DNA from: Fimbriosthenelais zetlandica
Lineage: Eukaryota
Reading direction: 5' to 3'
Assembly (NCBI GenBank): GCA_977030845.1
Contig: OZ365109.1
Coordinates: 15,004,001 to 15,068,000, forward strand
Length of the DNA: 64,000 nt
Below, one piece after another: positions 27,201-46,571 of this stretch; positions within the stretch are counted from its first letter, which is position 1, and every line of letters begins with the position of its first letter. The translations under genes and the position numbers were made by a program. The notes beneath the pieces are model-generated. The model was given only the letters and a program-made list of their open reading frames with translations, had not been told where the DNA came from and searched no databases.

Positions 27201-30139
27201 TTTTTCAATGAGAGTTTTGACAGGGGATGTTAGGCTGGTCGTTTGAGGAGGACCTTAGCGGTAGGCCTACAATAGAGCCTCATTAGTGGAGGATCATTGA
27301 GATCTCTGGTCTCCCAGGCGCCCGTCATCAATTAGCCAACAGCTGGAGGGCCTCTCACATAACCACCAGGCAATGCCCGCCCGCCGGCCACTAGGGGATC
27401 AACTGCTTAATACATTAGTCTTCAAAACACACTTATACCGGGAACAATGTCTTTTTACATTGATTGTAAATATACAGTCCTACAATGTAGCTGTAGGGTA
27501 CATGTATCTTATTTCTAAAGTTTTTCCATCAGACGGTGTAAAAATAAAATATTGAAGGGAGGATTGAAAATGAACTCGAGAAAACTCAACCTGGACTACA
27601 ATGGATTCTACTATATCTCCTTTTCTTTCGACACCATTTTTTTTAGTTATTGTTGAAAAGGAAGAATGTAACCAGTTCCAGGCTGGGCCATGTGTAGGTG
27701 AAATTTAATGCTATTTTTTGGGAGGGTTTGCCACGGTGGAATGTGGGAGATGGTGAGGTAATTCATGTTGGGGAAGGCCAGACCAACCTCCGATTTTACG
27801 AACATCAAGGTTGAGTAACGTACAGTCGACAGGGTGAAAGATGATTGATTTTCGTCAGGTCTAAATACAGGCCATGGCATTTAAACCCAGCCAAGCTTCG
27901 ATTACTGCGCCTGGGTCTGGAAGAGTTTGGGGGATATAGGGCACCAGGTATATCTGTTAACGAGACAAGATAATTCAGCCAACTAGCCATACATTTCTCT
28001 CGCGAGTAAGGAACTGTCGATAATTTCATAAATCAGACATTCGTTTATTTGACATCAATACAAATTTCAGCAGAATAATGGCTTTGAACAACCAGACTTA
28101 TAGATATCATTCTAAAGCCTCAGCCCTATTTTTGTTTTACACAAGGAATTGCATTATAAAAATACTTGGAATCAAACAAGTATATCCAAACTGAATATAC
28201 ATGTACAGATTCGATCTAAATATAAATTTAAAGGACTTTTTTGTCTGCTAACTTTGAAAGAATAGAGGATCTGCATGAAAGTAGATCAAACCACAGAGCA
28301 TGGTCTAAATGTTCCATAAACACAAAGCCTGTGTATGGGCCATGTCCTGGAGGGAGGCTGGGAAACATCATGTCTGGCAACAGTGACACAAAAGATATGG
28401 TTTGGCTGATAGAGGTCTTTATAACGGCCCATTTGTACATCCTTCTGAGCTTAGTCAACATACAGGTCTACTGCCTTTGGGAGGCTTATTTTACCTCATG
28501 ACTCTGAAAATACTACCCTGTATGGTTTGTATGAATAAAATATAGTATTAACCAATAGCGTACCGTAGATCTATTCTATGGTAAAATTCACGAGTTCATA
28601 GAGGCTTATATGCGAAAAATCATAGCAGGTGTATCAGATAGGCATAGGCCTTATCAGACAGATTGTAGATGGTAGTATTATCATGATGGTTAAAAATAAA
28701 TAAAGGTTGAAACTTCAGATTTTGTTCAATGCATCATGTCTCAAGTGTTAACCTAGGTCGAGACAATATTTATAATGCATTAGGGTAATGATTTGGTAAC
28801 AATATGACTGCCTTCAAGGACTTGATTCGCATCAGTAATTTTCAGTAGTTACCGTACCGTACTCAAGGTATGTGATCAGTGACCCAAGACATGGAAGCCA
28901 AACGGCAGGGAAAAGGCATACATGCAGGTAGGCCCCATCTAAAGGTGATATGCTGGATGAGTCGGTAAGCTTATCTCTAGGTTTACTGTACTACAAGTTA
29001 TAGACAAAGCTTGGTGTGAGGCCAGGCTTTGGCAATAAATATGAAACACATAGGTCTAAACAAACAAATTCATTCAAGGTTCAGCATACAAAAAACTGAT
29101 GTCCATTTTATAGGCCTACCTACTGTAGGAATACTACTAGTACTAGGATACCCGTACCTATTTTACACAAAGCCTAAATTTATCCTTTAAATTGAGTTTT
29201 GAGATGACTGACCCAGTGCTCCAGGACACAACAGTTTTTGAAAATCATGGATACAAGCCCTAGGCTAGGCCGGCCTAATATCTAAACCAACAAATAGGCC
29301 TATATTACAGTTATGCCTAACAGTATTACTTGCACAACCTTGTGACTTGTCCTAGGCTAGACCTAGGCTACCCGCTAGAGATCAACTTTATCTCACTGGC
29401 AGTCACTACAAAAAAAATATTTATTATGCCTTTTACTGTATTAGGCCCCCTATATTAAAAACAAGAAAAATCCACTGTAGATTATATATGACCAACATAT
29501 TGAAGAAGAGAGAATTGTAGCCCTCTTCAATCAGGCTCTTGTCGTATTGGTAGGCAACACTGACATTTTGGCCCAGAAGCAAAGGTACCCTTGTAGGCCT
29601 ACATCAAAGCCCCTACCGTGTACATAGACTAAAACATTAAAAGCCTATTTGGGCATCTGTCCTATGGCCTATGCATTCAGCAGCATTGCCAGCATTAGGC
29701 ATTACCGTACCATTGGTAGAGCCTGGTAGCCTACTGCTAGTACTGGTAGGCTATAGATTGTACTTGGAGCAGACATTAAGAGATTTACCGAAATATAAGT
29801 TCGAAACATTGACTAACTTTGAAGTTTCTGTAAAACATAGGCCTATAACTAATAGGTTCCACCTCTGGTGTCAAACAGCCCCAGTCTGCCCAGATAAATA
29901 ACAGGCCGTGTGAACTAAAGTCTAAACTGAATCGTGTCTGCTCATACTCACACAAAACTTGGAGGAGCACCATTCATGTGGTCTTTTTGGTGTTCCGCAA
30001 CGGAGAATCCAAAATAAGAATCCGGCCTTCCTTCCTTCACGATAGGAACTTTGGTATCCACATTAAAAGACGACAATGGGCAAGTATTAATAGCAATAAT
30101 CAAGAGAATCGCCGTACGGCGAAATCCACTCAGGGCCAT
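288..30139 (-). CDS. ITGA6/7: Integrin alpha subunit, laminin-binding PS1/alpha3-6-7 class (5' part; gene continues beyond the left edge)
   Basis: Exons 30139-29952, 3934-3789, 3408-3323, 3102-2920, 2641-2467, 1920-1800, 1634-1539, 1080-990, 429-288; all GT-AG and phase-compatible. Signal peptide MALSGFRRTAILLIIAINTCPLSS followed by the mature N-terminus FNVDTKVPIVKEG..DSYFGFSVA; FG-GAP repeats (VIVGAPRD, DQWLGVSVAS, ACAHRF, IIIGTPRAY, YVGGAPRS, FGSGFGYTVEVVDFNGDGDDDLVVGAPFY, FGISLANLGDIDRDGFQ). DQWLGVSV suggests the alpha3/6/7/PS1 class. Confidence 0.93.
657..869. repeat. Dispersed repeat family A, copy 1 (unclassified non-autonomous element)
   Basis: Shares TCTGAGTCAGTGTT...GTGAAACTCA...CCCTGATTTCCAGAGTCACTGGGA.CCCTG with 1243-1473 and 48610-48856. 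Confidence 0.7.
1243..1473. repeat. Dispersed repeat family A, copy 2
   Basis: GTCATATGAAGCAC..CAGTGGCGGGCATGGGATTG..GTCAAT...CCCTGATTTCCAGAGTCACTGGGAACCCTG; same orientation as the other copies. Confidence 0.7.
2219..2441. mobile_element. Putative hAT-like MITE in an integrin intron
   Basis: Imperfect 16-bp TIRs CAGGGTTCGAAATAAG / CTTATTTCCAACCCTT and internal repeated TGGCC motifs; no clean TSD seen. Confidence 0.5.
4250..4600. repeat. Purine-rich degenerate tandem repeat (AGAGGGGAAAGGGAC-like units)
   Basis: Strand-biased G/A tract with recurring AGAGGGGAAAGGGAC and GGAGAGCTAAGAGAG units. Confidence 0.7.
6727..6788 (+). promoter_or_regulatory. RFX X-box + X2/CRE (ATGCGTCATC) + Y-box (CTGATTGG) module
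   Basis: GTTACCAAGGTGAC 6727-6740, ATGCGTCATC 6758-6767, CTGATTGG 6781-6788; motif match only, function untested. Confidence 0.5.
7557..7732. mobile_element. pogo/Tc2-like MITE, inverted relative to the 105-269 copy
   Basis: TACCGTATTTGCCGG...CCGGCATATATACGGTA; internal CCTGAGCGGCCAGGGGGTGCGGTTTATA is the reverse complement of the 105-269 interior. Confidence 0.75.
11520..11812. repeat. (GA)n-rich degenerate microsatellite
   Basis: Continuous GAGAGAGAGGGAGA-type tract; explains the spurious E/R-rich and L/S-rich ORFs here. Confidence 0.85.
13000..13889. repeat. 348-bp tandem repeat (~2.5 copies) inside the Ginger-like element
   Basis: ORF-track duplicates at 13079/13427 and 13273/13621 are offset by exactly 348 nt; units nearly identical. 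Confidence 0.9.
14260..15124. mobile_element. piggyBac-type non-autonomous element (865 bp) nested in the Ginger-like element
   Basis: TIRs CCCTTTAATGCC / GGCATTAAAGGG, TTAA duplicated at 14256-14259 and 15125-15128; paralogous empty site (…ATCTTAACAACATATTTTGTGATGCG) at ~12991-13020. Confidence 0.88.
21257..21320. mobile_element. Very short inverted-repeat element (MITE-like)
   Basis: ACTGCACCCAAGCT...AGCTTGGGTACAGT; a 5' half copy (GTAACTGCACCCAAGCTTTGCGTTCTGCTACT) recurs at ~49768-49800. Confidence 0.5.
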
Positions 30140-30530
30140 TTTGAGGGACTTCTGCAAGCCTCACGGGCGATGTGAGTACCCATGAGATTTAACGAGACGC
30201 GTAGTGATATCAAATATCTGCAATGCATTAGGCGCCTTTTTGATGACAATAGTAACGTTTCAGAAATAATTCATTTCAAAAATAAGTATAGATTACATTA
30301 CATTCTAAAATCTTTAGATTTATTGTGGATGTTAAAGAGAAATAACTATAGTTCTGAAACTATTTTTCTAACCTGCGGAGGTGTACACTAAATTGGTCGA
30401 GGTGTTGCAAGGCACTTCCGGTTAAACGAAAGACTAGGGTTATCGACTTGCTTCACAGATAGAGAATGCATTGATTTCATGGGCTTATATCGTGTTAACG
30501 TTGATATTGGGTGACAGAAATTTGGTTAAG
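30140..30530. promoter_or_regulatory. Bidirectional promoter region, integrin alpha / BLOC1S1
   Basis: Divergent ATGs ~390 bp apart; ETS-type ACTTCCGGTT at 30414-30423. Confidence 0.7.
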
Positions 30531-32471
30531 ATGTTGTCACGGATGGTAAAAGAGCATCAGGGTCGGCAACAGATCAGGAAGCAAATTCAAGGTAGGAAAT
30601 TCATGTGGGCGGGGTCGCTGTCACTGGCACTGCCACTGGCTACCGTCCGTAGCACTAGCACTAGCAGGCTTACCACTGCACTGGCAGTGGGGACCAACAG
30701 GCCCACTTACTCGAAATTAATAGGCCCTAAATCATAAGCTAATTATTGATTAATGATAGGCCTACGGTCTAAGACTTATTACGGTAGGCTAACATAATAT
30801 AGGGCCTACCGGAAACGTATATAGGGAATATCGTAACTAACAATGAATCCATAACATGTCACTATTTCAGAAAAAAGAAAGAAGGAAGCAGCTGCTGCCG
30901 CTACAGCCCTCTCCCATGCACTCGTCGATCACCTCAATGCTGGGTAGGTGCACTTTTCTGTTGTCTTCTAGAGCTAAAATATTTAAGTATCAATATTTTT
31001 TCGAGGCTTATAGTTGCATGTTCCCTACCGTAGTAGGGCATATAAAACACGTACCAGGTATAGAACTAAGAATGCTATAGGGCTAATTAATGCTTCTTTT
31101 AATGACTACCGGTAATATGTAAAACTAAATTATATTAATTACAGTCATGATGGTGCCACAAATATGTAAGTATAGGCTAGTTACCGTACTGTACTTAAGA
31201 TTGGAGATTTTAAGGAGTTCTCTGGTTGGAACGGTTGAGGAATTCTCGCTCGCTTAGTGTAGGCCTAATTGTCTGGATTAATCAGTGTTAAGTTAACTTA
31301 ATGGCCAAGAGCTGGCATTCTATGAGATTGTATATACTGCAATACAATACCAGTGGCTTCGGCCTCCTAACCTCTTCTGAATTATAAATTATTGAATTAT
31401 CTTGCTATGCACTAGTAGATTTTAATACATAAGCAGGATCTCGGTCTTTGGTCTTTCCCTGGAACACTTAGTTTGACATACGGTACCATTAGTTCTAACA
31501 GAGAATAGTAAAAACTAATAGCTGGGTGGCTTGTTTTGCGGTGAGGACTTGGTACTACCGGTATATCATCTCTCTATAATTCAATCTTTATTACCCTCTA
31601 CCTATCCCGCATGGCCTTGGATTATTAATGATATGGTATTATCAGCAAACCAGCCTGTTATTTTAATGAATAATATATTTTAATAAATGCATTGCATGTT
31701 GGTTGAGGATTAATGGAAATGAATGTTGATGTCATTCTTTGAATCACATTCATTTAATCCAGGTTATCGGTAATACGTTGTCTGACTAAGGTACATTTTT
31801 GTAACTGCATTGATCAAATCATGGAGTACGGTAGGCCTTATCACGTATTCTGTGATTGTGCTTTAAATAATGTTCTGTCCATGTTCAATCTTCCAGTCCG
31901 TTCATAAAGCGATCTAGAGAAATTAATTGGGAACTGAAAACTGTTTAGTTCTTCACACCGCCCCCTCCAAAAACCCTAGTCTGACCTGTCAGATTCATTT
32001 CGTTCTTGACTTCTTACTTTTGTACTTTCATTGCCAGTGTCGCCCAGGCGTACGTGAACCAAAAGAAACTCGATACGGAGACGAAAATACTGCAGGCCAA
32101 TGCAGCACATTTCTCCAAACAAACGATGCAGTGGCTACATTTAGTTGAAGAATTTAATCAGTCACTAAAGGTAAGAAATATATCAGTATTCTGATTTTTT
32201 AACGAAATTGAATTCTCAGCTATTTTGATGCAAAACCAAATGAAACGAGCCGCTTAACTATATCGTTTTTTTCTCTCTAGGAAATAGGCGATGTTGAGAA
32301 TTGGGCGAGGAGTATTGAAACGGACATGCGAACGATATCGAGTGCATTAGAGTATGCGTATAAAGGTGAGAATATTTTTTAATTACGAGATTTTTGCACC
32401 TGAAGATTTGTATTTTTAAAATCATATCATAATATACTTATATTTCTTTTTCAGAAACTAAACATCAGTGA
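30531..32471 (+). CDS. BLOC1S1: Biogenesis of lysosome-related organelles complex 1 subunit 1 (122 aa)
   Basis: Exons 30531-30591, 30871-30943, 32038-32170, 32281-32365, 32455-32471 give [60 protein letters not shown]...[33 protein letters not shown], which aligns throughout with BLOC1S1 as I recall it. Confidence 0.96.
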
Positions 32472-33481
32472 TAAAGGTACATATATTCCACGAGAGGCAG
32501 TAAAATGACAGATGGGAGAGACTTTGCTATTCTTAATCATAATGACGCTCCTGTTAAGTGCCAGTACTGCTGCCATCTGAATGAATGTTCGTCGCCTATC
32601 TCCGTTTGTGCTTTTGTATGCCAGTATGAATCCTTAAAATTGGCCAGAAGTTGCCGATGATTATTCTGCCTATATTCGTAGATTTTGGAGGATTTGGACC
32701 GAAGCATTTCAACTTTTTGTGCATCTAATATGTTGAATTATTGTTACTGTATATTATAAAATTGATTAATTTGAGATTATTTACTTGTATTTTTCTTGTA
32801 AATAAATAAAATGAAAAGTATTCCGTTCTTCGTTTGGTATTAAAATTCATAACAGGTATAACCACTATGTGTCCTGAAATAAGGTTGATAAAATATTGAA
32901 CTTCTATTTGTTCTTCGGTTATACGATTAGTCATTTGCAGTGAACATAGCAAACACCAATATAGACCATTTAAACAGATTCACAAGCCTGCACATATGCC
33001 TATTCAGTTACCTATAGACTAAGGTATGTTATTACTAAATCAGAAAAATTAATATACTGAAAATAAATTAAGCATCTCCAAAGGAGGAAATGTTTATTTC
33101 TGAGGACTGACAAAACAGTGTTGGATCCACAGGAAAGACTTAGAAATATAATTATTATAGTGTACATTTTTCCACGTGGTATAAAACATTTTTCATGCAT
33201 CCTCTACATTCACACATGCACTCACGTTTGGCGAATTCGTATTACGTACTAAAATTCGGAAATCTAAACTCGGCACATATCAAATACTGGTGGGCCTATT
33301 GTCTAAACTTAAAGGGTCAAGATTATCTACACACTACCTTTTAATTCACACGTCTAACTTAGTCAGTAATTTTTAAATCAGTTGTAGCATTATGAAAGGG
33401 GAAATTTATAAATAGTGAATACAATTCACAATCCTATCAAAGCAACGAAAACTATTAGAAATGTCAATTTAAAAAAAAATC

Positions 33482-34849
33482 CTATTCCCCTTCTAGTGAC
33501 TTGATTTCATCTTCAATGGCCTGTTTCCGACCAATTTTTTCAAGTTGTTCCTTCGTCGGTTCTTTGAGATCGCCTGAATCAATTCTGGATTTAAGATCGT
33601 CAATTTGCCTCAGTTTCTTTCTGAGATTTTTCAAACGTTTGTCTGGTTCGGCAGCTTGCTGCTGGCTGGAAGGTTCTGCTTGGGGGGTACTGGTAGATAC
33701 CTTTTTCTCACTCGATACCTTTTTCTCAGTCGATACTTTTTTCTCACTTGATACTTTTTTCTCACTTGATACTTTTTTCTCACTCGATTGTTTGCTAATC
33801 TGAGTATTAGCTAATGCATGAGTAACTTTCTGAACGGAAGCTGCCTCTGCTTCTTTTTTCTTTTTCTCCTTTCGTTTCTGATTTTTCTTGGCAGCTTTCG
33901 AAAGTGCCGGTGCTGCGACAACATCTTTGTTGTTCTTAGCTTCTTCAACGAGACGTGGATCAAGACCAGGCGGGAGATCAGAGCGGCTCTTCATCCACTG
34001 CACACCTTTGTTTTCATACCTGGAAATTTATGAAAGAAAAGCTTAGAAAAACTAAGAAAATAACTGAGACTTGAAGCACATAAACGAAAGTCTGATCAAT
34101 GGCTTACAGTAATGGACGGTAGGCCTACCGGTACCTAGGGTACGGGTACATCAATTTTTTTTATGTGAAGTACCGGTACACTGGTACACTTACACTGGTA
34201 CTTCTTCTTGTGGGACATAACCATCTTTAACTCGACGAGCTTTTCGCCATGTTCCATCTGGACGCTGAGTCTGCGGAAGGAAATATTCACCTGAAAAGAA
34301 GGGAAAGTGACTGTTAGAAAGAAACCGCAGACGTAGGCTAAATTCTGTATGCATAGTACCGGTACTTGTATAGTTTTAAAGGGATGCCAAACACTTGACT
34401 TGGACGTCTTGGTATAAAGTTATTTTCCTAGGCTAGGCCTACTAACAAGAAATAGGAATAAGCCCTATTACTATTACTTGTATGAGCTAACCAATCCCAT
34501 GTCATGGCAATGCCCTTCTGGTACGGTATGGACTATGGTGACGGGTCAGGTCTGAGGTCAGCCACTGGATGCCAGACAGAGAGTATACACTATACAGTCA
34601 GAGTCAGTATGGTCAGTCTGACAAGTGACAATGTGACATGCAGACTCGCTCATGTGGCACAATTATGCGGCTGGCAGGATGTTCCACATCAATAACAATA
34701 TCTAATTATGATACCTGAAGATGCATATTTCTTTTATAAAGATAATAGGACTTGTTTTAATCGCTTACTAAGCAAAATTCGTAATGCTTACCCGTTTTTT
34801 CATCGAACACAATCCCTTCCCGTTGGGTGGATTGGGTGGTGGCCTCCAT
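33482..34849 (-). CDS. PYM1: Partner of Y14 and Mago (PYM1/WIBG), 230 aa
   Basis: Exons 34849-34792, 34290-34194, 34019-33482. Mago-binding motif [31 protein letters not shown]; C-terminal [17 protein letters not shown]...TKEQLEKI coiled coil. Confidence 0.95.
33696..33785 (-). repeat. Coding minisatellite, 5 x 18 bp, encoding (S[S/T]EKKV)5 in PYM1
   Basis: GATACYTTTTTCTCASTY units at 33696, 33714, 33732, 33750, 33768. Confidence 0.9.
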
Positions 34850-35460
34850 CTTGGATCGTGTTTGCGAGGCTATAAATTCCGCTTCTGATCAAAGTATAAC
34901 AATATCGTATAAAGTAAGTTTTATAAACTGGAACAATCCACATTTTTAAATTTGAAAGCATATTTATATATTTTGATTCCCCATATTGTTTCGAAAATCT
35001 AAATCTAATACTAAGTATCGAGACTATTTCTCAATGACCTTGACCTCTAATTAAACATGGCGGCCTGATGCAACTGTCACGGAAGGAACGGCATATTTAT
35101 TTTAAATCTTTTGTTTTTAAAGGTAAAGAACTACATTTTCTTACTAATACTTTTCATGTATGTGGAATTATAATTTTTGTCTTGGTTTAGTATAAATAGC
35201 ATGTTATATATTGAAGATATGTGGAGAAACGAGGTCCCCTCTGCAGGTCTGAGCCTGTCGCCAGGCCTACTTGCGGTAGTCAGAGGCGGCACAAACAAGG
35301 GAAGGGTGGGCCGCAACATGCCACTTGCTAGTATCAATAGCATTACTGCCACATTTTAGGCCACCATTTACTCAGAGGTGTGAACATCACTTAAAAATAT
35401 GATTTAAGGTACTGGAGGAGGAACGAAGATACAATAGTTACCGTCAGAAATAAGGAAACC
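34850..35460. promoter_or_regulatory. Bidirectional promoter / 5' UTR region, PYM1 / C2CD3
   Basis: Divergent ATGs ~610 bp apart; YY1-like AAACATGGCGG at ~35053; candidate C2CD3 5'-UTR intron ending CACATTTTAG at 35360. Confidence 0.6.
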
Positions 35461-38400
35461 ATGCCGGCGAAAAAGAAAGTGACAGGAGGAGGCACGCCAA
35501 AGAAGAACAAGGGAACCAAAAAATGGCGGCGGAGAGGTAGCTTCCAGTTAGAGGATGTACCAGTTAAAACAAGCCTCCCTCCAAAAGTCGATGGCCAGCT
35601 CCGATGTCATCTCCGTGTTTCAGTCACTCAGATTTTATGGAATGTGGGTAATGCTCCTGACTACACCCAGGTGCGCCTTATCTGGTGGGGCGAGGAAGGA
35701 AATGGCGCTATATTCAGGCCTGTGGATGTTAAAAGGGGTGAGAAAAAGGGTCCTATGCATAACACCATTGCTCGTTACCCAGTCAGATGTGGCATGAGAC
35801 AATTGGCTTCATATTTTACAGACATGGGAAATGTAACATTGGATATTCTCAGTGGTCGTCATAGTATAGTTGTTGGTCGGGCTCAAGTTGAGGGTTTGTC
35901 AGCCCTAAAGCCAAATCAACCCATAAACGGCTTCTTTCCAATTTTCTCTGCGGATGATGAAAAAGTTGGAGAATTGCAAGTAACGATCATTTTGGAACCC
36001 CTCATTGCGACAGACGACAGTATGTCCTCAGTGCCTACTCCTGACATGAGCCTACAAATGAGGGAAAGTTTCAGTGAAGCCCAGCCCATCAACCAGCCAC
36101 ACATCGTCCCCACCCCCGCACCCCCACCCATCTACAGTACTATAGAGGATCCTTTCAGATCACCCACTGCAAACCGGACAAGGACTACCCCTCAAGGAGT
36201 GGATAGTATGATATTTAATCGCCCTGTAAACCGGGTTAATGATAGTGGTTTCTCCTACCCCAGCACTGGCCCATCATTCCCTCAAAGTTCAGCGGAGGAG
36301 GCGAGGCCCAGTGCGATCCACAGCCTGGAAACACTGAAGGGTTCCGGAGCTGCTGCTGCTGGAGGCAGTCAATTTAATCTAAACACTGAATTGTCATCCG
36401 GGGGTTTCACTGGTGTTGATAGGGAACAGGCATATGCCACGTTGGCAGATATGACAAAGAAAGTTGAAAAAGATTTGAGGAGTACCTTCAGCAGTGGTGG
36501 CAGTAATCTAGTGTCTGAGTTGTTGGAGAGGGGTGAGAAACTGCGAAAAGCTATGATTGTCTCAACGATTCAACCCACCCCGACTAATAAAAGACCAATT
36601 ATAACTGATACAGCAACAACCCCATCACGGGTTGTAACATCACTTGACTTTTCAAAACACCTCACAGGCGATTCTGGACCAACTAGCTACATCTCTGGTT
36701 CACACATTCCGAATGATTTGCCTGATAATAATGAGCATTACAAGATTGGTGGAGGTCTAGGCAGTGTGGGTGTTGGCATCAGAGCAGGGTATAACCCACT
36801 GGGTCTATCTGTTGACACCGATATTGGACCGGACACAATAAGCATGGTGTTAGGCGATGACGGTGATATTGAACAGAGCCAGTTGATGAACACCATGGGA
36901 AGTCCTACATCTAGCGTTTCTGATCTTGAGGTTAATAGTGATATGGATGACCCAATCCATGACGATGACATTCTTGCTGAATTATTCTACAAAAATCCAG
37001 ACACAGAAGACAGCGATATTTCTCTGAGCGATTGTGAAGCTGAGAAACCTAATAAATATCAGGGTTGTTCAGACTCCAATGTTTCTCTGCATGAACCGGG
37101 CAATAAGCGGCCACCATCCCGAGGTTCCCGATGTTCCTCAAGTTCCAGCCTTCACCTCGACATGGAACCAACCCGGGACGTGGAACCCGACCATCACATC
37201 ACTCCCCAAAAGAAAAAAAATAGAAAACACAGGAGGAAGAAAGGTGCGATTTCAGCTGATTCAACTGACCAGAGCGAAAATGAACTGAACAACACATCAT
37301 TGATATCCTCCACTAGAGATGATAGCAGATTTGACTCCAGTTTGAATTCAGGCAGGTCTTGTGTTGATGGTCTCAGTGTTGAGAGGCTGACCCTCCTAGG
37401 CCGTGTACATGTGGCCAGGGTGGTTATCGACAACCTAGCTCTCTCCCTCAGCCAACAAACCATCCCCACAGAGACAAAGGGAGGTGGGAAACATGGAAAA
37501 CCACCACGCCCTGTGAAAAAGGCCGGCACCTATTTTGTTGAGTACCAGTTTCCAGTTGTGGCAACAGCCCCCAGTGCTGTGGCAACAGAAGTGATGCGGG
37601 TTGCCTCTAAGAAAGTTACAGATGGATTGGTTTCCTTCGGGCATCGGTCAGTTTTTCCCGTGGTTTTTGATGGTGAAGTTATCAATAAATGGTGGAAGTC
37701 AGCTTTAGTGTTTAAAGTGTACAATCGCTCAAGCAACCAGAAGGTACCAACCATGCTGGGCATGTGCTCTGTCCCACTTAAATCAGTTCTGAAATCTGAG
37801 GCACTCTACTTGGAGCAGCAGCTCGAGATCATGGACAGGTCAAATACAAGTACTAGTAAGACATCCAGAAGTTCCAGACATCTCCTAGTTGGTCTCATAA
37901 AGCTCACCATTGAACTGGCCTCAGACAGTAAAGATTTTGCTAAGGCCCTGGCACGAACCCGGTTAGCAGAGATGACTAATGCTAAGATAGTGGCACTTCC
38001 TCAGGCACCGCTCGCCCAAAGTTCCCATGCTCCACCTGATCCACTGAAACGTCAAAGTGAAGCTAGATCAACATCAGAAACACAAACAGAACCGCAGCAC
38101 ACCAATCTAGATGAGGTTCCTTCAGACATGCCTTTAAGTTCTATCAAAGGTATACCGCCAACGACAGGGTACCAAACTCACGGCTCAACTGCTATAACAT
38201 GTGATAAGTTTGTGGAACCATCAGAATTGCCTATTCTACACACCTATCTGAGCATACCTGAAGGGGAAAACATAACATTCCATGGTGTCAAGTACACACA
38301 ACATGGGGAAACATTAACACAGATTCCCAAGTCCTTCACTGATTGTCAGGGTCATGACATGAGGGCGAGAAATCTCTATCTTGTCTGCCGTATGTTCTGG

Positions 38401-41400
38401 CTTGATGATGCAGTTCGCTCTAACATCTGCTGGGGAACCATTGACCCAGAGTTCAAGTTTAATCAAGTCACCCCAGTGCTGCTCTCAGCACCATTGCTGG
38501 AGAGATTAAGGAATAACTTTGTCATTGTTGAAGTATGGGATAAGAAAGCATCTGAGAGTGACCAGATTGTGGGAATAGTTAAACTACCGCTCCACCAGTT
38601 CTACATGTCCTACAGACACAAGCAGATAGCCACCACTCTGCTCAACTCCCAATATCCTGTCATATCAGTGGATACAGCCATGCCTATCCTCAATCCATTC
38701 ACAGGTGCTACACATGGGAAAATCAAAGTTCTTCTGGCCATGGGTTCACACGAACAGGTCTGCCACTTACAACATCTGAAGGAAGATGGACAACCTGATG
38801 CTAAGCCCCCAGAGAGACCACTAGAATACAGGGAGAGAAAAGATCTTCTTGTGGATCCCTGTCAAAACCAAGCACCTGATTCAGGAGTTGAAAATATTGA
38901 ACACATGTTCGAAGTGTGTGTGGAAGGTGTTCGTGGTTTGAAGCTGATGGACACTATGATGTGGGGAGAAGCTGATTGTTATATACAGTATCATTTCCCT
39001 TCACAGGCACAGACTCAGACTAACCAGGGACCAGCACTCGTACATGGTTTGAGTTTGAGGGCCTTCCGTACAGCCACCACATTATGTGTACCAGATCCTG
39101 TCTTCAATAATGTAACAAAACATCAGATTATGATGCCTGAGCGCATCCCTGTCCAAAGGGAGCTACTCGCGGCATGTGCAGGAGTCGGCAGTGGACCGGG
39201 TGGTGTACCATTTGAAGTGTGGTTCAGATACTACCACCCTAACACCCGTGATCAGCTAGTGGCTAAAGGAACCTTGCCTCTTGCCAAACTTTGTGCCATG
39301 GTGACCATGAAGCAGAAAGGTGAAGTGAGCACACAGACGTTCACTCTGCCGCTCACTCATATTGGTGATGAGGATGTAGGCTCGGGAATTACAGGCCATA
39401 TTGATGTGATTATCAACTACTATACTTACCTCACCAAGTCAGAGGTACCCCAGCCGACAGAGGTGTGTGAGGAAACTGAGGAACAGCCTGCGACTAGGTC
39501 TCCCATCAAGGATCGGTCTTTATCTATAACCATTAAGTCTCCTATCAAGGAACGACCATTATCTCCCACAATTAGGTCTCCTGTCAGAGTCACCTCTCCC
39601 ATGACAATCCAAGTACTAGACACATTCAGAGTCCATATATCAGTAGAACGGGCCTATCATCTTGCTCATGTCAAAGACAGAAATACTGGTTTGGAAGTGC
39701 CACCCAATAGCTATGTCAGTTATCAAAGTGCCGATCAAGAAGGACCATTGTATACCTGTCTTGTAGAAGGAAATGACAGTCCCATGTGGTGCTATGAACA
39801 TGATACAATACTTGAGAAGAGTGTGTTGACTCAGGAGAATAAGAATCTTGTATTCAAGGCTTGGCATAAACCAATGGGTCCCAGTCGAGAGCCAGACAAG
39901 TCAACTGATAAGGTGTTGGGTTTTGTATCGGTAGATCTGGCCCCTCTCACTTCAGGATTCAGTCAGATTGCAGGCTGGTACAACATAATTGACTTCCACG
40001 GTCTGTGTCAGGGTCAGATTAAGATTTCAGTCACCCCTCTAGATGCTGTTTGTGATGAGGTACAGAGTGTGGGCCTGCCTCAGTCATCAGTACTCGGGGG
40101 ACCTGGCTTTGCTATGCCCAGCGTTTCCTCACAGCTTGGTGTCAGCAATCTGGATCCAGAATCACAAGGTGTGCTGGCTCGCTTTTCCCAGCATTACGAG
40201 AATGTTAAAAACTTCCATGAGTCTCTGGCGGCTTCCATTCATGGGCTTAGCCGACCCGTCCAGAAATCTACTGATGATGAGATACCACCACAATCGAGAT
40301 CTACACTCTTCAGGAGTCTGAGGTCGAACATAGCTGAGCTGGACACCTTAACTAATAAGCTCAAGAAGCGTCTAGAGCCAAACTCATCCATAAACCCTCC
40401 ACCCATCCCCAGCCAGCCAAACATAGCTTCAAATGACACTTTCAATGACAAGCCTCAGTCCCACTGTACAGATGCAGAGACTTCAGCTCTCACCAACTCC
40501 CAACACCTGCTTCCCCTTCCCAATGACATCCCTACCAGTAGCAATGATGAAATGTACCATAATCCCAAGGAGGACCCCAGAACTTCAACTGCAAGAGCCC
40601 AAGGCAAACAAGCCACATCTCTATTGAACTTTGTCCATACAAATGTCGGGGGTATTTGGATAGAGAAACACCATGTTCAAGACAAAGAATATCCTGAGGC
40701 AGATCCCAGAGGTGGTATACGGAGTGCGATGGCGTTGTTTGACACCTATGGCTCTGAGCAGCACATTCAGCATGGGGACAGTGATGAGGACTATGTTGGT
40801 GGTGGTTTAGGTTATGGTGATGACGAGGATAACCTTGATAATGATCAGATGTTGGTTATCCCGCGTCCTATCAATGACGTATCTAATGTTAACTTTAACA
40901 ACATGGCTCCTCTTGGTCAAGGTCAAAACACAACCCAGGATGAAGAAGCAAGTTGGTGTGTTCCTCTTTCACCGAAGGCACAACAACATCATGAAGAATT
41001 CCTCCCTTCCAGCGATGAAGCAAAAGCACATGATGAACAAGAATTTGAGATTGATCTGGGAGGAACTGCCTCCACATTTGGTGTCACGGGGACTAGCTTG
41101 GGAACGATGGAAGGGGTCAGTGCGTATGATCATATCCTAATGGGTGACAACTTCAACAACACAAGTGAACCAGATCCAAATTTTGAAGACAGCTGGGCTA
41201 CTTCTGATCCATATGTTATTCGTGAATATGGAAGTGGCATCATAAATGAAAGAAAGAATGAAGTGGGGGAAAGGGCGCAGGAATGTGATGAAGATGAAAA
41301 AATTCTAGAAGAATCTCTTCATGGAATTCCCCAACTTACCACAAATCAGGAGGAAGAGGTGGATTCAGAGAAGTCTCTCGAGGACCCATATAGTTTATTG

Positions 41401-42045
41401 ATTCACCCGCCTGTCATCAGTCTAAACAAAGAGGTGGATTCAGAATTAGAGAATTCCATAGAGGCAGACCTTACAAGTGAGGAAGAGGGCACTTACTCTC
41501 TATCTGAAGGCAGCAGAGCGTACAGACTGGGATCGAGCGGATCATACAAATCTGCTGATACAAGCCAACCCCAGTCTGACTGGGACAAGGGAGTTATGGA
41601 AGAAAACAACAATTCAAGGTTGCTCGAACACATGGACGATCTTACTTTAAATGACCATAATGATATCACAGTAGAGAGTTCAACTCTACAGGAACCGGTA
41701 ACAGACACGGGAAACGAGACGACAAAATGGGATATGAACGATACCCCTGCTCTAAGTGACCATACTCATGACCTATCTCAAGTCTCTGAATTTGGTCAAG
41801 GCGAGAGAAAAACTGATGGAGCTTCAGAGACTAAAGAAAGGAGAGAACGGATGATGAGGAGGGTGCTATATGAAGCTAATAGCTGGAGTGATTGTGAAGC
41901 TACCCATGTAGATACAGGTTTAGACCTCTTGAACTTCACAGCTCGGTTCATGGGTTCCTCCTCTGCCAGAACACGGCCTTTACCCGGCTCTCAACACACT
42001 GAGCGTATTGCCAAGATATTCTCATCCAAGTACACTAATAAATAA
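35461..42045 (+). CDS. C2CD3: C2 domain-containing protein 3 (centriole elongation/ciliogenesis), 2194 aa in a single coding exon
   Basis: One uninterrupted ORF with C2CD3 motifs from end to end: TSLPPKVDGQLRCHLRV, RYPVRCG..YFTDM, DGLSVERLTLLGR, TYFVEYQFP, LLERLRNNFVIVEVWDK, PLHQFYMSY, WGEADCYIQYHFP, RDQLVAKGTLPL, GWYNIIDFHGLCQGQIK, C-terminal ERIAKIFSS. Confidence 0.96.
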   Translation: MPAKKKVTGGGTPKKNKGTKKWRRRGSFQLEDVPVKTSLPPKVDGQLRCHLRVSVTQILWNVGNAPDYTQVRLIWWGEEGNGAIFRPVDVKRGEKKGPMHNTIARYPVRCGMRQLASYFTDMGNVTLDILSGRHSIVVGRAQVEGLSALKPNQPINGFFPIFSADDEKVGELQVTIILEPLIATDDSMSSVPTPDMSLQMRESFSEAQPINQPHIVPTPAPPPIYSTIEDPFRSPTANRTRTTPQGVDSMIFNRPVNRVNDSGFSYPSTGPSFPQSSAEEARPSAIHSLETLKGSGAAAAGGSQFNLNTELSSGGFTGVDREQAYATLADMTKKVEKDLRSTFSSGGSNLVSELLERGEKLRKAMIVSTIQPTPTNKRPIITDTATTPSRVVTSLDFSKHLTGDSGPTSYISGSHIPNDLPDNNEHYKIGGGLGSVGVGIRAGYNPLGLSVDTDIGPDTISMVLGDDGDIEQSQLMNTMGSPTSSVSDLEVNSDMDDPIHDDDILAELFYKNPDTEDSDISLSDCEAEKPNKYQGCSDSNVSLHEPGNKRPPSRGSRCSSSSSLHLDMEPTRDVEPDHHITPQKKKNRKHRRKKGAISADSTDQSENELNNTSLISSTRDDSRFDSSLNSGRSCVDGLSVERLTLLGRVHVARVVIDNLALSLSQQTIPTETKGGGKHGKPPRPVKKAGTYFVEYQFPVVATAPSAVATEVMRVASKKVTDGLVSFGHRSVFPVVFDGEVINKWWKSALVFKVYNRSSNQKVPTMLGMCSVPLKSVLKSEALYLEQQLEIMDRSNTSTSKTSRSSRHLLVGLIKLTIELASDSKDFAKALARTRLAEMTNAKIVALPQAPLAQSSHAPPDPLKRQSEARSTSETQTEPQHTNLDEVPSDMPLSSIKGIPPTTGYQTHGSTAITCDKFVEPSELPILHTYLSIPEGENITFHGVKYTQHGETLTQIPKSFTDCQGHDMRARNLYLVCRMFWLDDAVRSNICWGTIDPEFKFNQVTPVLLSAPLLERLRNNFVIVEVWDKKASESDQIVGIVKLPLHQFYMSYRHKQIATTLLNSQYPVISVDTAMPILNPFTGATHGKIKVLLAMGSHEQVCHLQHLKEDGQPDAKPPERPLEYRERKDLLVDPCQNQAPDSGVENIEHMFEVCVEGVRGLKLMDTMMWGEADCYIQYHFPSQAQTQTNQGPALVHGLSLRAFRTATTLCVPDPVFNNVTKHQIMMPERIPVQRELLAACAGVGSGPGGVPFEVWFRYYHPNTRDQLVAKGTLPLAKLCAMVTMKQKGEVSTQTFTLPLTHIGDEDVGSGITGHIDVIINYYTYLTKSEVPQPTEVCEETEEQPATRSPIKDRSLSITIKSPIKERPLSPTIRSPVRVTSPMTIQVLDTFRVHISVERAYHLAHVKDRNTGLEVPPNSYVSYQSADQEGPLYTCLVEGNDSPMWCYEHDTILEKSVLTQENKNLVFKAWHKPMGPSREPDKSTDKVLGFVSVDLAPLTSGFSQIAGWYNIIDFHGLCQGQIKISVTPLDAVCDEVQSVGLPQSSVLGGPGFAMPSVSSQLGVSNLDPESQGVLARFSQHYENVKNFHESLAASIHGLSRPVQKSTDDEIPPQSRSTLFRSLRSNIAELDTLTNKLKKRLEPNSSINPPPIPSQPNIASNDTFNDKPQSHCTDAETSALTNSQHLLPLPNDIPTSSNDEMYHNPKEDPRTSTARAQGKQATSLLNFVHTNVGGIWIEKHHVQDKEYPEADPRGGIRSAMALFDTYGSEQHIQHGDSDEDYVGGGLGYGDDEDNLDNDQMLVIPRPINDVSNVNFNNMAPLGQGQNTTQDEEASWCVPLSPKAQQHHEEFLPSSDEAKAHDEQEFEIDLGGTASTFGVTGTSLGTMEGVSAYDHILMGDNFNNTSEPDPNFEDSWATSDPYVIREYGSGIINERKNEVGERAQECDEDEKILEESLHGIPQLTTNQEEEVDSEKSLEDPYSLLIHPPVISLNKEVDSELENSIEADLTSEEEGTYSLSEGSRAYRLGSSGSYKSADTSQPQSDWDKGVMEENNNSRLLEHMDDLTLNDHNDITVESSTLQEPVTDTGNETTKWDMNDTPALSDHTHDLSQVSEFGQGERKTDGASETKERRERMMRRVLYEANSWSDCEATHVDTGLDLLNFTARFMGSSSARTRPLPGSQHTERIAKIFSSKYTNK

Positions 42046-42708
42046 CACTTCGTCCTCCTCCAACTACCTTGTATATAAATTTAGTGGCATGTGGTGATAC
42101 TCAGAAAATGTTGGGGAAATATATTTTCGACAAAAAAAGCAGTTTATTGCACGATGACTTGAATTTGAACTTGACTTTATATTGGTGTTGTATATTTATA
42201 ATTGGTGTTATATATTCAATTTCATAGTTAATTTAGTATAGCCAGAAAGAATTCCGTCCAGACCTACCCATTTGGGGTTCCATTACTCACTATAACATGT
42301 TCTATTTTTTCGGTGCTAACTATGGAAAATTACTCATATAACATGTACAGTGTAACCATTATAAAGAAAATAGAATATCTATGAAAAGATTGTAAAATAT
42401 GACGTGGTAGATGATGTTTTTGATGCAAAACTTGTGAACATTAGATATTATTGCTGTTTCCTAAACCTTTACAGTATGATTCTCATTGCTAACCAAGATA
42501 ACATTCCTACAATGAAATTATTTTTCAATTCCAGATATTGATTTCCATGTAAGAGAAACGTAGCAGAGTATATATCATTACTTGACCATACTTGGCAGTA
42601 AACTCAGTACTTGAGTGGAATTATAGATTGTTCATTACATGTGGACAAAACGTCCAATGCTTCTAGCTGCTGTTACTTTAGCCACTTAGGGAAATAAACG
42701 GATAAAAA

Positions 42709-43515
42709 ATGTCTGAAAAAGCGGATGATGTTGTCGTTGTGCCGCAGAACTTTGACGAACTGCTGGTCGAACAAGTGAAAATAAACCCAGTCATATACAA
42801 CACAACCGACAGAAATTTCAAAAGCACAGATAAAAAGGAGGAAGCGTGGCAAGCCATCGCCGTTTGTCTTTCTGTGCCGTTTGACTATTGTGCCCAAAGA
42901 TGGCGGACCATTCGAGAACGTTATGTGAAGAAAAAGAAGCACATAGCTGAGAACTCGGAAGACGTTAAACGAGTTCTCGATCAGTGGTCATTGTTCCAGA
43001 CTCTTGAATTTCTGGATCCCTACATTTCTCATAGGAAGCGGCCTGTACAATGTACATACGGTCGGGGTGCGACCAATGGTGAAGTCAAAGCTGAAGACTC
43101 AGGCTCAGACGCCGTCAGCTCACCTTCTACCTCCTATGTACTTGGTCACGCCTCTGACAAGATCAAAAAGAGAGTCCAAGACTTGGTGAGCCGCAGACAA
43201 TTTTCCTTTAATGATAAAAAGAAGAATTTAAAAAGGCTCCAAGGTCATCAGAGAGAGGATATTAATTTATCACTCCTAAAGGCTGTAGCCTCGGCTAAAA
43301 ATCCAGAGGACGATGACGAGGAGGCACACTTTGGAAAGATAGTAGCCGCCTCTCTCCGACGGTTGCACCCTCGACAAAGGGCACAAACTAAATTAGTGAT
43401 TTATCAAATTTTAGTGGACACAGAATTTCCCCCACATGCAGCCGGTGATGGATCTGAACTTCAAGTGATATATACCGACAGTATCAAACAAGAACCCGAT
43501 CCTGAAACACAATAG
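42709..43515 (+). CDS. MADF (Myb/SANT-like, Adf-1 type) DNA-binding protein with C-terminal BESS motif, 268 aa, intronless CDS
   Basis: LVEQVKINPVIYNTTDRNFK..KKEEAWQAIA...CAQRWRTIRERYVK...WSLFQTLEFLDPYI matches the MADF pattern; DDEEAHFGKIVAASLRRLHPRQRAQTKLVIYQILVDTEF matches the BESS pattern. Confidence 0.88.
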   Translation: MSEKADDVVVVPQNFDELLVEQVKINPVIYNTTDRNFKSTDKKEEAWQAIAVCLSVPFDYCAQRWRTIRERYVKKKKHIAENSEDVKRVLDQWSLFQTLEFLDPYISHRKRPVQCTYGRGATNGEVKAEDSGSDAVSSPSTSYVLGHASDKIKKRVQDLVSRRQFSFNDKKKNLKRLQGHQREDINLSLLKAVASAKNPEDDDEEAHFGKIVAASLRRLHPRQRAQTKLVIYQILVDTEFPPHAAGDGSELQVIYTDSIKQEPDPETQ

Positions 43516-44318
43516 TGTAAAGTAACTCTTGCTGGATTATATGAATTTAGTTATGTTAGTTTATATATTGGTTTAGATCTTCGGTGGAGATGGGTTTATA
43601 ATGCATGTATGGTTAGGATAAAATGACATGTACAATGAAAGAATGTTACGTTCAACTTGATTTGGATGTATATAATTATGCTTGAATGAAATGATCATCC
43701 CAGAACTTTTCTTTGTCTAAGTAACAGAAAATGGTGGTGGTATACTTAGCTTAAATCTGGATGTAAAGAAATATATTTATTGTTATGAGAAAGATTTGTT
43801 GTTATATTGATCCAGGTGCCAACATGAAATTTTATATTATCTGGTGCCATTCTCATTTAAATATATTTGAATATTGTAATTCCTTCATTAATGATGAAAT
43901 GATCAAAAAAGGGAATTTGTTATTATAAATTGGGTTGTCAAGAAATTAATACGTGAAAAGCTACAAGAATATCACATGGATCCTGAATTACTGCCAAGCT
44001 TAGATTCACCGCCATGCTCCCTGCTAATACAAAAGGAGGAGGGTCAAGATTCTCCAGGCTTCAAAGGTAGTAATCAGTTGATGTTAGACATATCCTGCTT
44101 ATTTTATTCCTATTTTGGTATCACTTGCATGTTACAACAGAATTTCATTGTATTTAAAATTTATGAAATATTCTCTGCTGCGTTTCTCAAAACTTAGCGG
44201 TGTTCACGTTTTGATGTAGGCCTAAAAGTTTTCTTATGTTTTCATTTTATTTTTCCTGTAGGTGGACGCGCCCCATTCGGCCCTCTTAATCTTTAGTGAC
44301 AAGATTCAATCAGGCGTC

Positions 44319-46571
44319 ATGGCTCGCCCTCTAAATATCAACAGGAAATCGTACCTGATTCAGCTCGTTCACCATCATCTCTATCCCCATGGGAGAATGG
44401 TTCGCAATACTATCCACACCTCAGCTCTACGATTTACCTACAAGATGTCTGACAGTCTCCGCGATTGCTACCAGCTTCTGGGCGTTGATAAGGATGCTGA
44501 TGACGAGGAACTAAAACAGGCCTACATGAAGCTCGCCAAAGAGTACCATCCAGATAGTGCTTCAGTGACTGCTGATACTAACAAATTCAACCAACTTCAG
44601 GAAGCCTACCGAACTGTCAAGGTAAACTCCTTCGTGTTTATAACCAAAAATAAGTACTTATTCAAAAACATTGTATTTATATCGTATCTGATATTGCCAT
44701 CAGCTTCTGCATATAACATTAGGCTTCCAAACCAAGTTTCATTCTCCCCTGCCATGAAAAATGAAGGCCCGTAAATGGTACTCCATAGGTAGGCCTACCG
44801 GTACTCCTTCTCTATGCTTCACTCGCTTGGTTATTTCTACACTTCCACCTTAGGGGAGAACGTTTGGCCGTATTAAAAAATATGAACCTTTGGGTATATC
44901 GCTGTATAAACATCCTAAATAAAAAAAATAAAAAATTATGAGCATATGATTACTTTCACCGGTGTCGCACAGAATAGGTAGTGAGATTGTTTTTTTTTGT
45001 TTTCCAGGCCCACCGTATAGATGCCGAAGCGAGGATGACTAAAGCACTATCTGCTATGGCGGTGGAGGAAGATGATGACCCAGGCTACAAACATAAAGCT
45101 CCTCAGCACCGTCAGTTCTTAAGCAACGAGGTATGTACCGGGTATTTTATTCCAATTAAATTAGGCTGGAATTGTCTGCAATAATAATAATGGTTCCCAC
45201 TTTCTTGGCCTCACAAAAGTCCCGGAATTTTCCCGGACGTTTTGAGTTTATTCCCGGACCAAGAGCAAAAGCTCGTCGTCCACATAGGCCATAGAACTGC
45301 AATTTCCCCGGACTTTTCCCGGTTTTACACAATTTTAAAGAAATTCCAGGATTTTCCCAGCCCGGGAGATATATTATTTTAAAAAAATCCCAGACTTCCC
45401 ACATTCGAGTTTTTGATCGACATCTAAGTCCATGTGACGGAGAAGAATCGATCATGACCATTGATGTCATAAATTATGAGAGGATAAGATTAAATAAATA
45501 GGAACTCTTCCCGTTTCAGGGTGTTGGTTATGGTTCACCATCACAAAGACAGCGTCAGTACCAGGAACACAAAGCTGCACGAGCAGCAGAGGCTGTGGCT
45601 AACAAGAGAATCTCAGTCATTCAAAGTCAGTATGAAGATGCTCTTTTGGTGCAAGACAAGAAATCCACACAGAAAAGGACCACAAGGTAGGACATTGGCT
45701 TTGTTAAATATTCTTCACAACCAATTTGATATAAGACTCTTATGAATCTTACTTCTAATCAGTACCAATTTATAAGTTCATTGACTGTTACCACTGTTTC
45801 AGGAGTGGGATGGAGCGACTGGTAGAAGACTTGATACAGGAATCGATGGCTCGAGGGGAATTTGATAACTTACCAGGTGAAGGCAAGCCATTAGAGAACC
45901 AGTCCGGCACGCCCAAACCAGTAGATGACCTCACATACCACCTCAACAAGATTGTCATCGACCAGGGCTTTGCTCCTGAATGGGTTCGATTGACCGGTGA
46001 AATTAGGTAAATGAAAATTCTTAATCTAGATTTGAGTGAAAAATTAACCGGTAAAACGTGATACAACAGTTTGAATATTTGAAGAATTGGCCTAAGCCTT
46101 AAGCGTTCATGGAATTCCCAGATTACATTGATTTCAGGGGATAAGTATCCATAATAGATTCTGGAATAATAATATAATATTCTATTATTCCTAACTAATA
46201 TATTTTTCTTTTTCAGCAAAGACTTCACCAAGACAAGAGATGAGCTTAGGGCAGCCAGAATGCGGGCCGGTCCAGAACCAGTCTCCTCGGCAAATAACAA
46301 AGCATGGGAGAAGGCAGTTGGTGAATTCAAAGATAAAATGCTTGAAGTCAATAAGAAAATAGATAGACTGAATATGTTGGCTCCGTCCATGTACCAGCAG
46401 CAGGTTCGCTTCAACATTAACAAAGAACTAGAGAAAGTTAATCAATGGTATAAGGATGATGTCAAAACTGGAGGTGAGCCGAAAGTAACCAAGGCAGAGG
46501 TCAAGGAGAAGGTGGAAAATCAAGATGCGAAGGGTAGTTTATGGCAGGGAATCAAAGGATTTTTTACATAA
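44319..46571 (+). CDS. DNAJC28: DnaJ homolog subfamily C member 28 (J domain + DUF1992), 383 aa
   Basis: Exons 44319-44621, 45008-45130, 45520-45686, 45803-46006, 46217-46571, phase-consistent. J domain CYQLLG...AKEYHPD; HKAPQHRQFLSNEGVGYGSPSQRQRQY; ERLVEDLIQESMARGEFDNLPGEGKPL; GFAPEW. Basic N-terminal extension resembles a mitochondrial presequence. Confidence 0.93.
45195..45400. repeat. Unclassified repeat fragment in DNAJC28 intron 2
   Basis: Begins GGTTCCCAC and contains multiple TTTTCCCGG/TTTTCCCAG motifs reminiscent of family A; ends not defined. Confidence 0.35.

Follow-up and report, generated by a model that had tools for sequence, protein, structure and literature searches.

Why does Fimbriosthenelais zetlandica carry C2CD3, a gene that is essential for cilia in vertebrates, as one long exon beside PYM1, when its orthologs in other animals are rich in introns and sit beside a different gene? 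We examined this locus within a stretch of 64,000 nucleotides (the window), compared it with orthologs and with the rest of the genome, and weighed several ways in which it might have arisen.

An intact C2CD3 gene with a reduced set of domains

The preliminary description reported an intact, single-exon C2CD3 reading frame of 6585 bp, and the list of open reading frames confirms this (Table 1). By our estimate, a run of 2194 stop-free codons would arise by accident with a probability of about 1e-46. The N-terminal domain matches C2_C2CD3_N with E = 2e-48, over profile positions 2-143 of 145, and all of the named homologs of the protein are C2CD3. The top matches are the C2CD3 proteins of Lingula and molluscs, at 37-48% identity, and an exhaustive search of representatives found no closer relative above about 55-60% identity. 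The protein is collinear with the C2CD3 proteins of Lingula and Ptychodera, starting at residue 14 and reaching their last 23 residues. In a tree, it is the sister of Capitella C2CD3 (SH-aLRT 98), on a longish branch of about twice the median length. Of the columns that do not vary among seven other bilaterian orthologs, it retains 85%, and to have done so despite the long branch, with an intact frame, argues for long-term purifying selection. Judging from the alignments and the tree, this is a clear C2CD3 ortholog with a reduced domain set.

Table 1. Features of the C2CD3 locus, in window coordinates
Feature	Position	Strand	Evidence
PYM1 (partner of Y14 and mago), at least 3 exons, head-to-head with C2CD3	33482..34849	-	ORFs; PYM homologs, Pfam Mago-bind; exon 1 donor
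Spacer, 611 bp, PYM1 ATG to C2CD3 ATG, putative shared promoter	34850..35460	.	Sequence
C2CD3 coding sequence, single exon, 2194 codons and stop	35461..42045	+	ORF list, Pfam, homologs, N-to-C alignment
N-terminal C2CD3N-type C2 domain, residues 37-180	35569..36000	+	PF25339
Ser/Pro/Glu-rich linker, 61 aa, residues 1327-1387	39439..39621	+	Alignments, intron maps, block fold
C2 domain, residues 1388-1530, orthologous to the C2 after the missing block	39622..40050	+	Local alignment
AATAAA overlapping the last C2CD3 codons, possible polyadenylation signal, no A-tract after it	42037..42042	+	Sequence and motif scan
MADF-domain gene, single exon, 268 aa	42709..43515	+	Pfam MADF_DNA_bdg 1.8e-15
DNAJC28-like gene, at least 4 exons	44262..46571	+	Pfam DnaJ 1.8e-16; DJC28-type motif exon 45759-46007

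The earlier statement that the protein is full length with all of its C2 domains is wrong. In the alignments, Lingula residues 1290-1764 (a conserved block of about 470 residues) are replaced by the low-complexity linker. In the orthologs, this block has a Pfam C2 match and its fold is that of two tandem C2 domains (Lingula 1307-1510 and 1548-1705). Of the 482 residues that are invariant across seven bilaterian orthologs, 90 lie in the missing pair. The remaining C2 blocks of C2CD3 are present. We considered whether the C2 domain after the linker might be a fusion with a skipped C2, and rejected this: in local alignment, it scores 423 with Lingula 1765-1903 and 53 with the part that was skipped. 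We also rejected a second, hidden copy of the block elsewhere in the genome, as neither the Pecten block nor a block profile found a match there; a blank search is not proof of absence.

How was the block lost? The 5' edge of the gap, where the linker begins, coincides with a phase-0 ancestral intron position (after Lingula K1289 or Pecten Q1297), and the next phase-0 intron, after Lingula 1712, falls where the second folded C2 ends. The linker resembles the disordered start (52-63 aa) of the next ortholog exon, both in its length and in its acidic beginning. A template mRNA from which nine consecutive exons (1269 nt) had been skipped in frame could account for the gap. Because the edges of the block lie in non-conserved linkers, a genomic deletion at a later time is about as good an explanation.

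Loss of every common intron, in the only copy found

Exact exon maps give 46 coding exons for C2CD3 in Lingula, 43 in Pecten, 46 in Ptychodera, 34 in Owenia, and 32 in the model from Capitella, the nearest annotated relative, where the gene is far from the single-exon state. If we count an intron position as common when the alignment column and the phase are identical in two or more species, then there are 43 common positions, and the window gene has none of them. The wholesale intron loss that had been proposed is supported. We rejected the idea that introns are hidden in frame within the ORF: we saw no insertions specific to it at the ancestral intron positions and no 75-nt stretches with a GC content below 0.33. 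Among the papers that we searched, none joins C2CD3 to "intronless."

The neighbors had been described as intron rich. PYM1 and the DNAJC28-like gene do have introns, but the gene immediately downstream, which encodes a MADF domain, has a single exon. As PYM1, DNAJC28, and PPME1 (the ancestral neighbor of C2CD3, discussed below) all have introns, there was no genome-wide purge.

The window gene is also the only C2CD3 that we can find. With its own protein and the Capitella protein as queries, it was the sole match in the 447-Mb assembly (79 contigs). To the extent that the assembly is complete, there are no exon-sized matches elsewhere to Capitella C2CD3 or to the block profile, and no second, intron-containing C2CD3 was found.

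The ancestral site and the present site

In Lingula, Pecten, Ptychodera, and Capitella, a PPME1-like abhydrolase of 396-399 amino acids lies head-to-head upstream of C2CD3. In F. zetlandica, PPME1 (C37:14694650-14697321) has kept all 11 of its conserved exon blocks, and it is on a different contig from C2CD3, which is on C1. Since the pairing seen in four species is broken here, the window C2CD3 lies off the ancestral locus, as far as gene order can tell us. In those four species, C2CD3 is multi-exonic and linked to PPME1; the window gene is neither. We did not find a relic of C2CD3 from 55 kb upstream to 23 kb downstream of PPME1, and when we compared nine C2CD3 proteins to C37:14640001-14720000 with tblastn, the sole match had E = 0.71. 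We found no match to the genes that flank C2CD3 in Capitella (CCDC22 and those upstream) in either the PPME1 region or the window. The genomes of some annelid lineages are heavily rearranged, which weakens the argument from relocation.

At the present site, C2CD3 and the MADF gene (which is single copy, with one genomic match) lie between PYM1 and the DNAJC28-like gene, which is probably the ancestral head-to-head partner of PYM1. In an animal contig from an ENA metagenome (sample ERZ26222911), BLOC1S1 and the last exon of PYM1 are followed, after 3.9 kb, by DnaJ and DJC28_CD exons on the opposite strand. The largest ORF in the 3.9-kb gap is 162 amino acids, which leaves no room for C2CD3. The flanks of this contig match those of the window, so the site is "empty" of C2CD3 and the MADF gene there. 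We read this order from the contig's gene table. In another, collinear contig (L025), neither C2CD3 nor DNAJC28 is within 4.1 kb of PYM1, so the local order differs between species. The PYM1 locus of Mercenaria has no neighbors within 10 kb and hence is uninformative.

Given the 611 bp from ATG to ATG, it is plausible that C2CD3 captured a bidirectional promoter from PYM1. A candidate non-coding exon and intron can be read in the spacer, with donors at about 34917 or 35133 and an acceptor at 35359. If this 5'-UTR intron is real, then it would be newly recruited in the retrogene, not "retained" as had been suggested.

Origin of the gene and comparison with known systems

We think that the window C2CD3 is probably an orphan retrogene, that is, a retrocopy at a new site whose multi-exon parent has been lost. 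In an ancestor of this animal, which is probably an annelid, a spliced C2CD3 mRNA would have been reverse-transcribed, and the cDNA would have landed in the short spacer that separates the head-to-head genes PYM1 and DNAJC28, on a chromosome-scale contig other than PPME1's. The copy would have become expressed, presumably via the bidirectional promoter on the PYM1 side. The parent beside PPME1, with its roughly 45 introns, would then have been lost, which would leave as the sole C2CD3 a single exon that encodes the N-terminal C2CD3N domain, most of the C2 domains, and the conserved C-terminal tail, without the tandem C2 pair.

We compared the k-mers of the two flanks and scanned for A-runs and for repeats, direct or inverted, and saw no poly(A) remnant, target-site duplication, LTR, or TIR flanking the gene. 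The only repeat-like traces nearby are an A7 run at 42132 and chance AT-rich 9-11-mers. Because these hallmarks of retroposition are absent, we infer the RNA route rather than demonstrating it. In an old insertion, a poly(A) tract and a target-site duplication would be expected to decay, and their absence neither supports nor excludes a retrogene.

The preliminary description offered two routes, a retrocopy that replaced its parent or cDNA-mediated gene conversion in place. We favor the first because the PPME1 pairing is broken and because PYM1 and DNAJC28 are directly adjacent in another animal's contig; the second needs an extra step of relocation. In that scenario, conversion would have erased the introns at the PPME1-linked locus, and a DNA-level rearrangement would later have moved the gene beside PYM1. 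This too would yield an intronless ORF like the one observed, without the hallmarks that we failed to find. Recombination-type loss does occur in C2CD3: in two lophotrochozoan-like contigs (L021 and L022), the gene has lost introns partially and block-wise, and long introns are still kept. But two independent events would be required, and the gene would have to be excised precisely from beside PPME1 and dropped into a short spacer without any ancestral flank; the absence of a relic at PPME1, and of the Capitella neighbors at either locus, also speaks against this. We consider it improbable.

Even less likely, in our view, is a gradual process of many separate intron losses and ordinary rearrangement, without a single RNA-mediated event. 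Individual introns do come and go among the orthologs (the one after exon 3 is missing in Pecten, for example, and the Capitella model counts just 32 exons). However, the loss of all of about 45 introns would be extreme when the exon blocks of PPME1 and the introns of the neighbors were kept, and the ORF has no visible intermediate remnants. Finally, an assembly can miss regions and a blank search is no proof of absence, but it is very unlikely that the ORF is not a working gene (either a young processed copy, with the real gene missing from the assembly, or a frame with short spliced introns), given a 6.6-kb stop-free frame whose conservation on a long branch points to purifying selection, an assembly with no other exon-sized match, and neither AT-rich dips nor extra inserts at the ancestral intron sites.

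If an orphan retrogene is the right explanation, then a single-copy gene of great length and with many introns can give way to a processed copy that is regulated anew and encodes fewer domains. It would also be a case of gene relocation through RNA in a lophotrochozoan that is clean and can be dated, and a warning to pipelines that rely on gene models and synteny. The gap itself suggests that natural evolution can remove the tandem C2 pair (Lingula 1307-1705). A stronger version, which we hold tentatively and rather doubt, is that a retrocopy of about 7 kb, made from an exon-skipped isoform, became the sole C2CD3 of this lineage, so that one event erased about 45 introns (including an ancient U12-type site), split the PYM1-DNAJC28 pair with rewired regulation, and removed two conserved C2 domains. 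If so, this lineage would be a natural experiment in which the tandem pair is dispensable for the function of centrioles and cilia, which the window gene presumably serves.

How does this locus compare with known systems? Retrocopies that replace their parent genes are known, and most of the cases on record involve short genes of mammals and flies. In the classical model of intron loss, reverse transcriptase makes a cDNA that recombines with the gene, which stays at its original locus. The precise removal of many adjacent introns is shared with that model, for which the two contigs above provide partial examples within C2CD3. In contrast, the window gene has changed its locus and all of its introns are gone.

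In human and mouse, C2CD3 is a luminal protein of the distal centriole that is needed for distal appendages and ciliogenesis (PMC12707624, PMC8239364). The window protein has the N-terminal C2CD3N-type C2 domain, the C2 series, and the conserved C-terminal tail of the canonical metazoan protein, and groups with it in the tree. It differs in being encoded by 1 exon instead of the 43-46 coding exons of three full-length invertebrate orthologs, in not being linked to PPME1, in lacking the tandem C2 pair (Lingula 1290-1712), and in its branch of about twice the median length.

The closest parallel may be with orphan retrogenes such as CHMP1B, which are retrocopies that replaced multi-exon progenitors (Ciomborowska et al. 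2013, PMC3548309). By sequence criteria, the window C2CD3 resembles them: it is intronless and single copy, its orthologs are multi-exonic, its locus is not orthologous to theirs, no parent was found in the assembly, and the ORF appears to be under purifying selection. Unlike those cases, it has no poly(A) tract or target-site duplication left. It is also far larger, with a 6.6-kb coding sequence and about 45 introns erased, and it encodes a large centriole and cilium protein, from a lophotrochozoan, in which two conserved domains are absent. It reveals no new mechanism; it is a further case of a known phenomenon, unusual for its size.

A single-exon C2CD3 and its lost introns

The C2CD3 gene of Fimbriosthenelais zetlandica is a single unbroken open reading frame of 2194 codons. 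As about 3 of 64 codons are stops, we estimate that a stop-free run of this length has a probability of roughly 1e-46 by chance. Pfam identifies its N-terminal domain as the one diagnostic of C2CD3 (PF25339, E = 2e-48, residues 37-180) and adds weaker C2 matches. Its strong database matches are all C2CD3, and the best are proteins of about 2550-2850 amino acids from Lingula and molluscs (37-48% identity). In BLASTP its alignment with orthologs is collinear, starting at residue 14 and continuing to the end of the protein (residues 2168-2194 align with the final 23 residues of Lingula and Ptychodera C2CD3). The one exon therefore includes both ends of the gene, as the preliminary description had claimed.

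Locations of features in the window, in contig C37 of the same assembly, and in comparison loci (L002, Lingula; L013, the stretch of C37 near PPME1; L021, L023, and L025, ENA contigs)
Feature	Location	Strand	Remarks
C2CD3	window 35461-42045	+	contig C1
MADF-domain gene	window 42709-43515	+	268 aa, single-copy, between C2CD3 and DNAJC28
PPME1	C37:14694650-14697321	+	
Satellite array	C37:14693140-14693863 (L013:3140-3863)		63-bp unit, about 11 copies
U12-type intron 3 of C2CD3	L002:11080-11351		
Annotated "gene" 3' of C2CD3	L002:35756-44306		
Lophotrochozoan-like C2CD3	L021:4994-16371		ENA accessions of L021 and L022 in text
C2CD3 fragment	L023:3516-5058		window residues 636-1152
Bacterial/phage-like genes	L023:5088-14481		
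ITGA first exon, BLOC1S1, PYM1	L025:4155-9561		matches window 29987-34849

Searches of the 447-Mb, 79-contig assembly with the window protein and the Capitella protein returned only this reading frame, and no second C2CD3, with introns or otherwise. Of 392 aligned residues that seven other bilaterians all share, the window protein keeps 334 (85%); those orthologs themselves keep 90-98% when each is left out in turn, so it seems to be constrained yet somewhat faster-evolving. This would fit its long terminal branch (1.38, versus a median of 0.75) in a maximum-likelihood tree of 26 C2CD3 proteins, where it is sister to Capitella teleta inside Lophotrochozoa (SH-aLRT 98). The tree thus points to a probable annelid. 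Capitella is the nearest annotated relative, and the protein collections contain nothing closer; the best identity was about 55-60%, over short pieces.

To map exons, each annotated ortholog protein was placed exactly on the genomic locus that encodes it, using a splice-aware script. This gave 46 coding exons in Lingula, 43 in Pecten, 46 in Ptychodera, and, from gene models, 34 in Owenia and 32 in Capitella. In a joint alignment of these five species, 43 intron positions are common to at least two of them in column and phase, and many are common to all five (protostomes and one deuterostome), so the ancestral gene had roughly 45 coding introns. None of the 43 is present in the window gene, which bears out the proposed wholesale intron loss. 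Nor, as far as this can be tested, is a single-exon C2CD3 general in the lineage, as the Capitella gene is multi-exon and at the ancestral locus. No intron still lying in frame was seen within the window gene: no window-specific insertion of 8 or more amino acids lies at an ancestral intron site, and no 75-nt stretch of the reading frame is under 33% GC, as an AT-rich retained intron would be.

Intron 3 of Lingula C2CD3 is a U12-type AT-AC intron (ATATCCTT...AC). The equivalent intron 3 of Ptychodera is too, so that brachiopod and hemichordate agree in type, position, and phase; in Owenia and Capitella the intron at this place is GT-AG, and Pecten has lost it. The "gene" annotated 3' of C2CD3 in Lingula has copies of C2CD3 exons (97-100% identity) and is probably a haplotig or an assembly duplication.

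Two ENA metagenome contigs (L021 and L022; ERZ24986310, ERZ26052449; GC 0.31-0.33) encode lophotrochozoan-like C2CD3 with a few giant exons, one spanning 9 ancestral intron sites and another Lingula 1350-1900, and introns of 0.7-4 kb. This gene structure points to an independent, partial intron loss. A further contig (L023, ERZ25039479 contig_25712) has an intron-free C2CD3 fragment with one frame change, directly abutted by bacterial or phage-like genes (PDDEXK_1, a 1083-aa Prok-E2/ThiF/JAB/Patatin protein, Sipho_Gp157, and DUF2201), and near 5-6 kb its GC jumps, from about 0.40 up to 0.58. It is most likely a chimeric assembly; transfer of the fragment from a eukaryote to a bacterium is less likely.

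Old and new neighbors of C2CD3

In Lingula, Pecten, Ptychodera, and Capitella, C2CD3 has as its nearest upstream gene an alpha/beta-hydrolase of 396-399 amino acids, which is encoded on the other strand, head to head with it and within the upstream 10 kb. From conserved peptides, we take it to be PPME1-like. Given its presence in these four animals, the pair appears to predate the protostome-deuterostome split. This deeply conserved bidirectional pair is broken in F. zetlandica, where PPME1 is on a different contig, and the 80 kb around it show no detectable trace of C2CD3. The ancestral place of C2CD3 is occupied by a satellite array immediately upstream of PPME1, with an ANAPC10-like reading frame further upstream.

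F. zetlandica PPME1 keeps all 11 conserved exon blocks of Lingula PPME1, with short introns, and in the window introns interrupt both PYM1 (3 or more exons) and the DNAJC28-like gene (4 or more), so the intron loss in C2CD3 is not genome-wide. The neighbors had been described as intron-rich; these two do have introns, but the MADF-domain gene directly downstream is a single exon. AATAAA occurs 16 nt before its ATG.

The gene order in the window is BLOC1S1(+), PYM1(-), C2CD3(+), MADF(+), DNAJC28-like(+). An animal contig from a metagenome (ERZ26222911) also has BLOC1S1 tail-to-tail with PYM1, and DnaJ and DJC28_CD exons on the opposite strand 3.9 kb from the last exon of PYM1. According to its gene table (rather than its DNA), the largest reading frame in between is 162 amino acids, and the 6.6-kb C2CD3 frame cannot fit in that gap. 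The PYM1-DnaJ distance is 10.4 kb in the window, an excess of about the size of C2CD3, and the site looks like an insertion. Contig L025, also from an animal, supports microsynteny of ITGA, BLOC1S1, and PYM1: their order and orientation are as in the window, and the exons are 74-81% identical in nucleotides. C2CD3, MADF, and DnaJ are all absent from the 4.1 kb before its PYM1 start codon.

A missing pair of C2 domains

The gene was thought to retain all of its C2 domains, but between residues 1326 and 1388 a 61-aa Ser/Pro/Glu-rich linker replaces about 470 ortholog residues (Lingula 1290-1764, Pecten 1298-1770). The C2 domain at 1388-1530 is clearly the ortholog of the one after this block (score 423, against 53 for the block itself). 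Few parts of C2CD3 are as well conserved as this block, which has a mean column identity of 56% in 8 bilaterians and contains 90 of the protein's 482 columns that do not vary in 7 orthologs. It is present in Capitella and has a Pfam C2 match in three species. Its AlphaFold model has two beta-sandwich domains (the second with pLDDT of up to about 90) and then a disordered tail, and the best structural matches are tandem-C2 proteins (extended synaptotagmin C2A-C2B, ferlins, BON1) and the C2 domains of CEP120. Searches for the block with a Pecten query and with a profile from 8 species found it nowhere else in the genome.

The 5' edge of the block is exactly a phase-0 intron (after Lingula K1289 or Pecten Q1297), and the phase-0 intron that follows it comes after Lingula 1712, just beyond the second folded C2. 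The nine ortholog exons between them total 1269 nt, and the linker resembles the disordered, acidic first 52-63 residues of the following ortholog exon. The template mRNA of a retrocopy may thus have skipped nine exons. We give this about an even chance, as a later in-frame deletion would also do: both edges of the block lie in unconserved linkers.

Probable retroposition and parent loss

We think it fairly probable that C2CD3 is an orphan retrogene, a retrocopy that replaced its multi-exon parent, with a reduced domain set. A spliced mRNA would have been reverse-transcribed and retroposed to a new site, and the parent then lost. The main rival, conversion of the gene in place by cDNA and then relocation, needs two events and seems unlikely; both routes had been proposed, and the first is favored.

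Neither a poly(A) tract nor a target-site duplication, an LTR, or a TIR is left around C2CD3, as expected if the event is old. With 611 bp between the start codons of C2CD3 and PYM1, a shared promoter is plausible. The candidate 5'-UTR intron, if real, would have been recruited rather than retained by an orphan retrogene.

We infer the RNA step from four features together: total and precise removal of introns, a non-orthologous site in a bidirectional spacer, no parent copy, and introns kept in the old neighbor. This is the signature of retroposition followed by parent loss that is known from orphan retrogenes (PMC3548309), and this C2CD3 stands out by its size and by two conserved C2 domains having been lost in nature.
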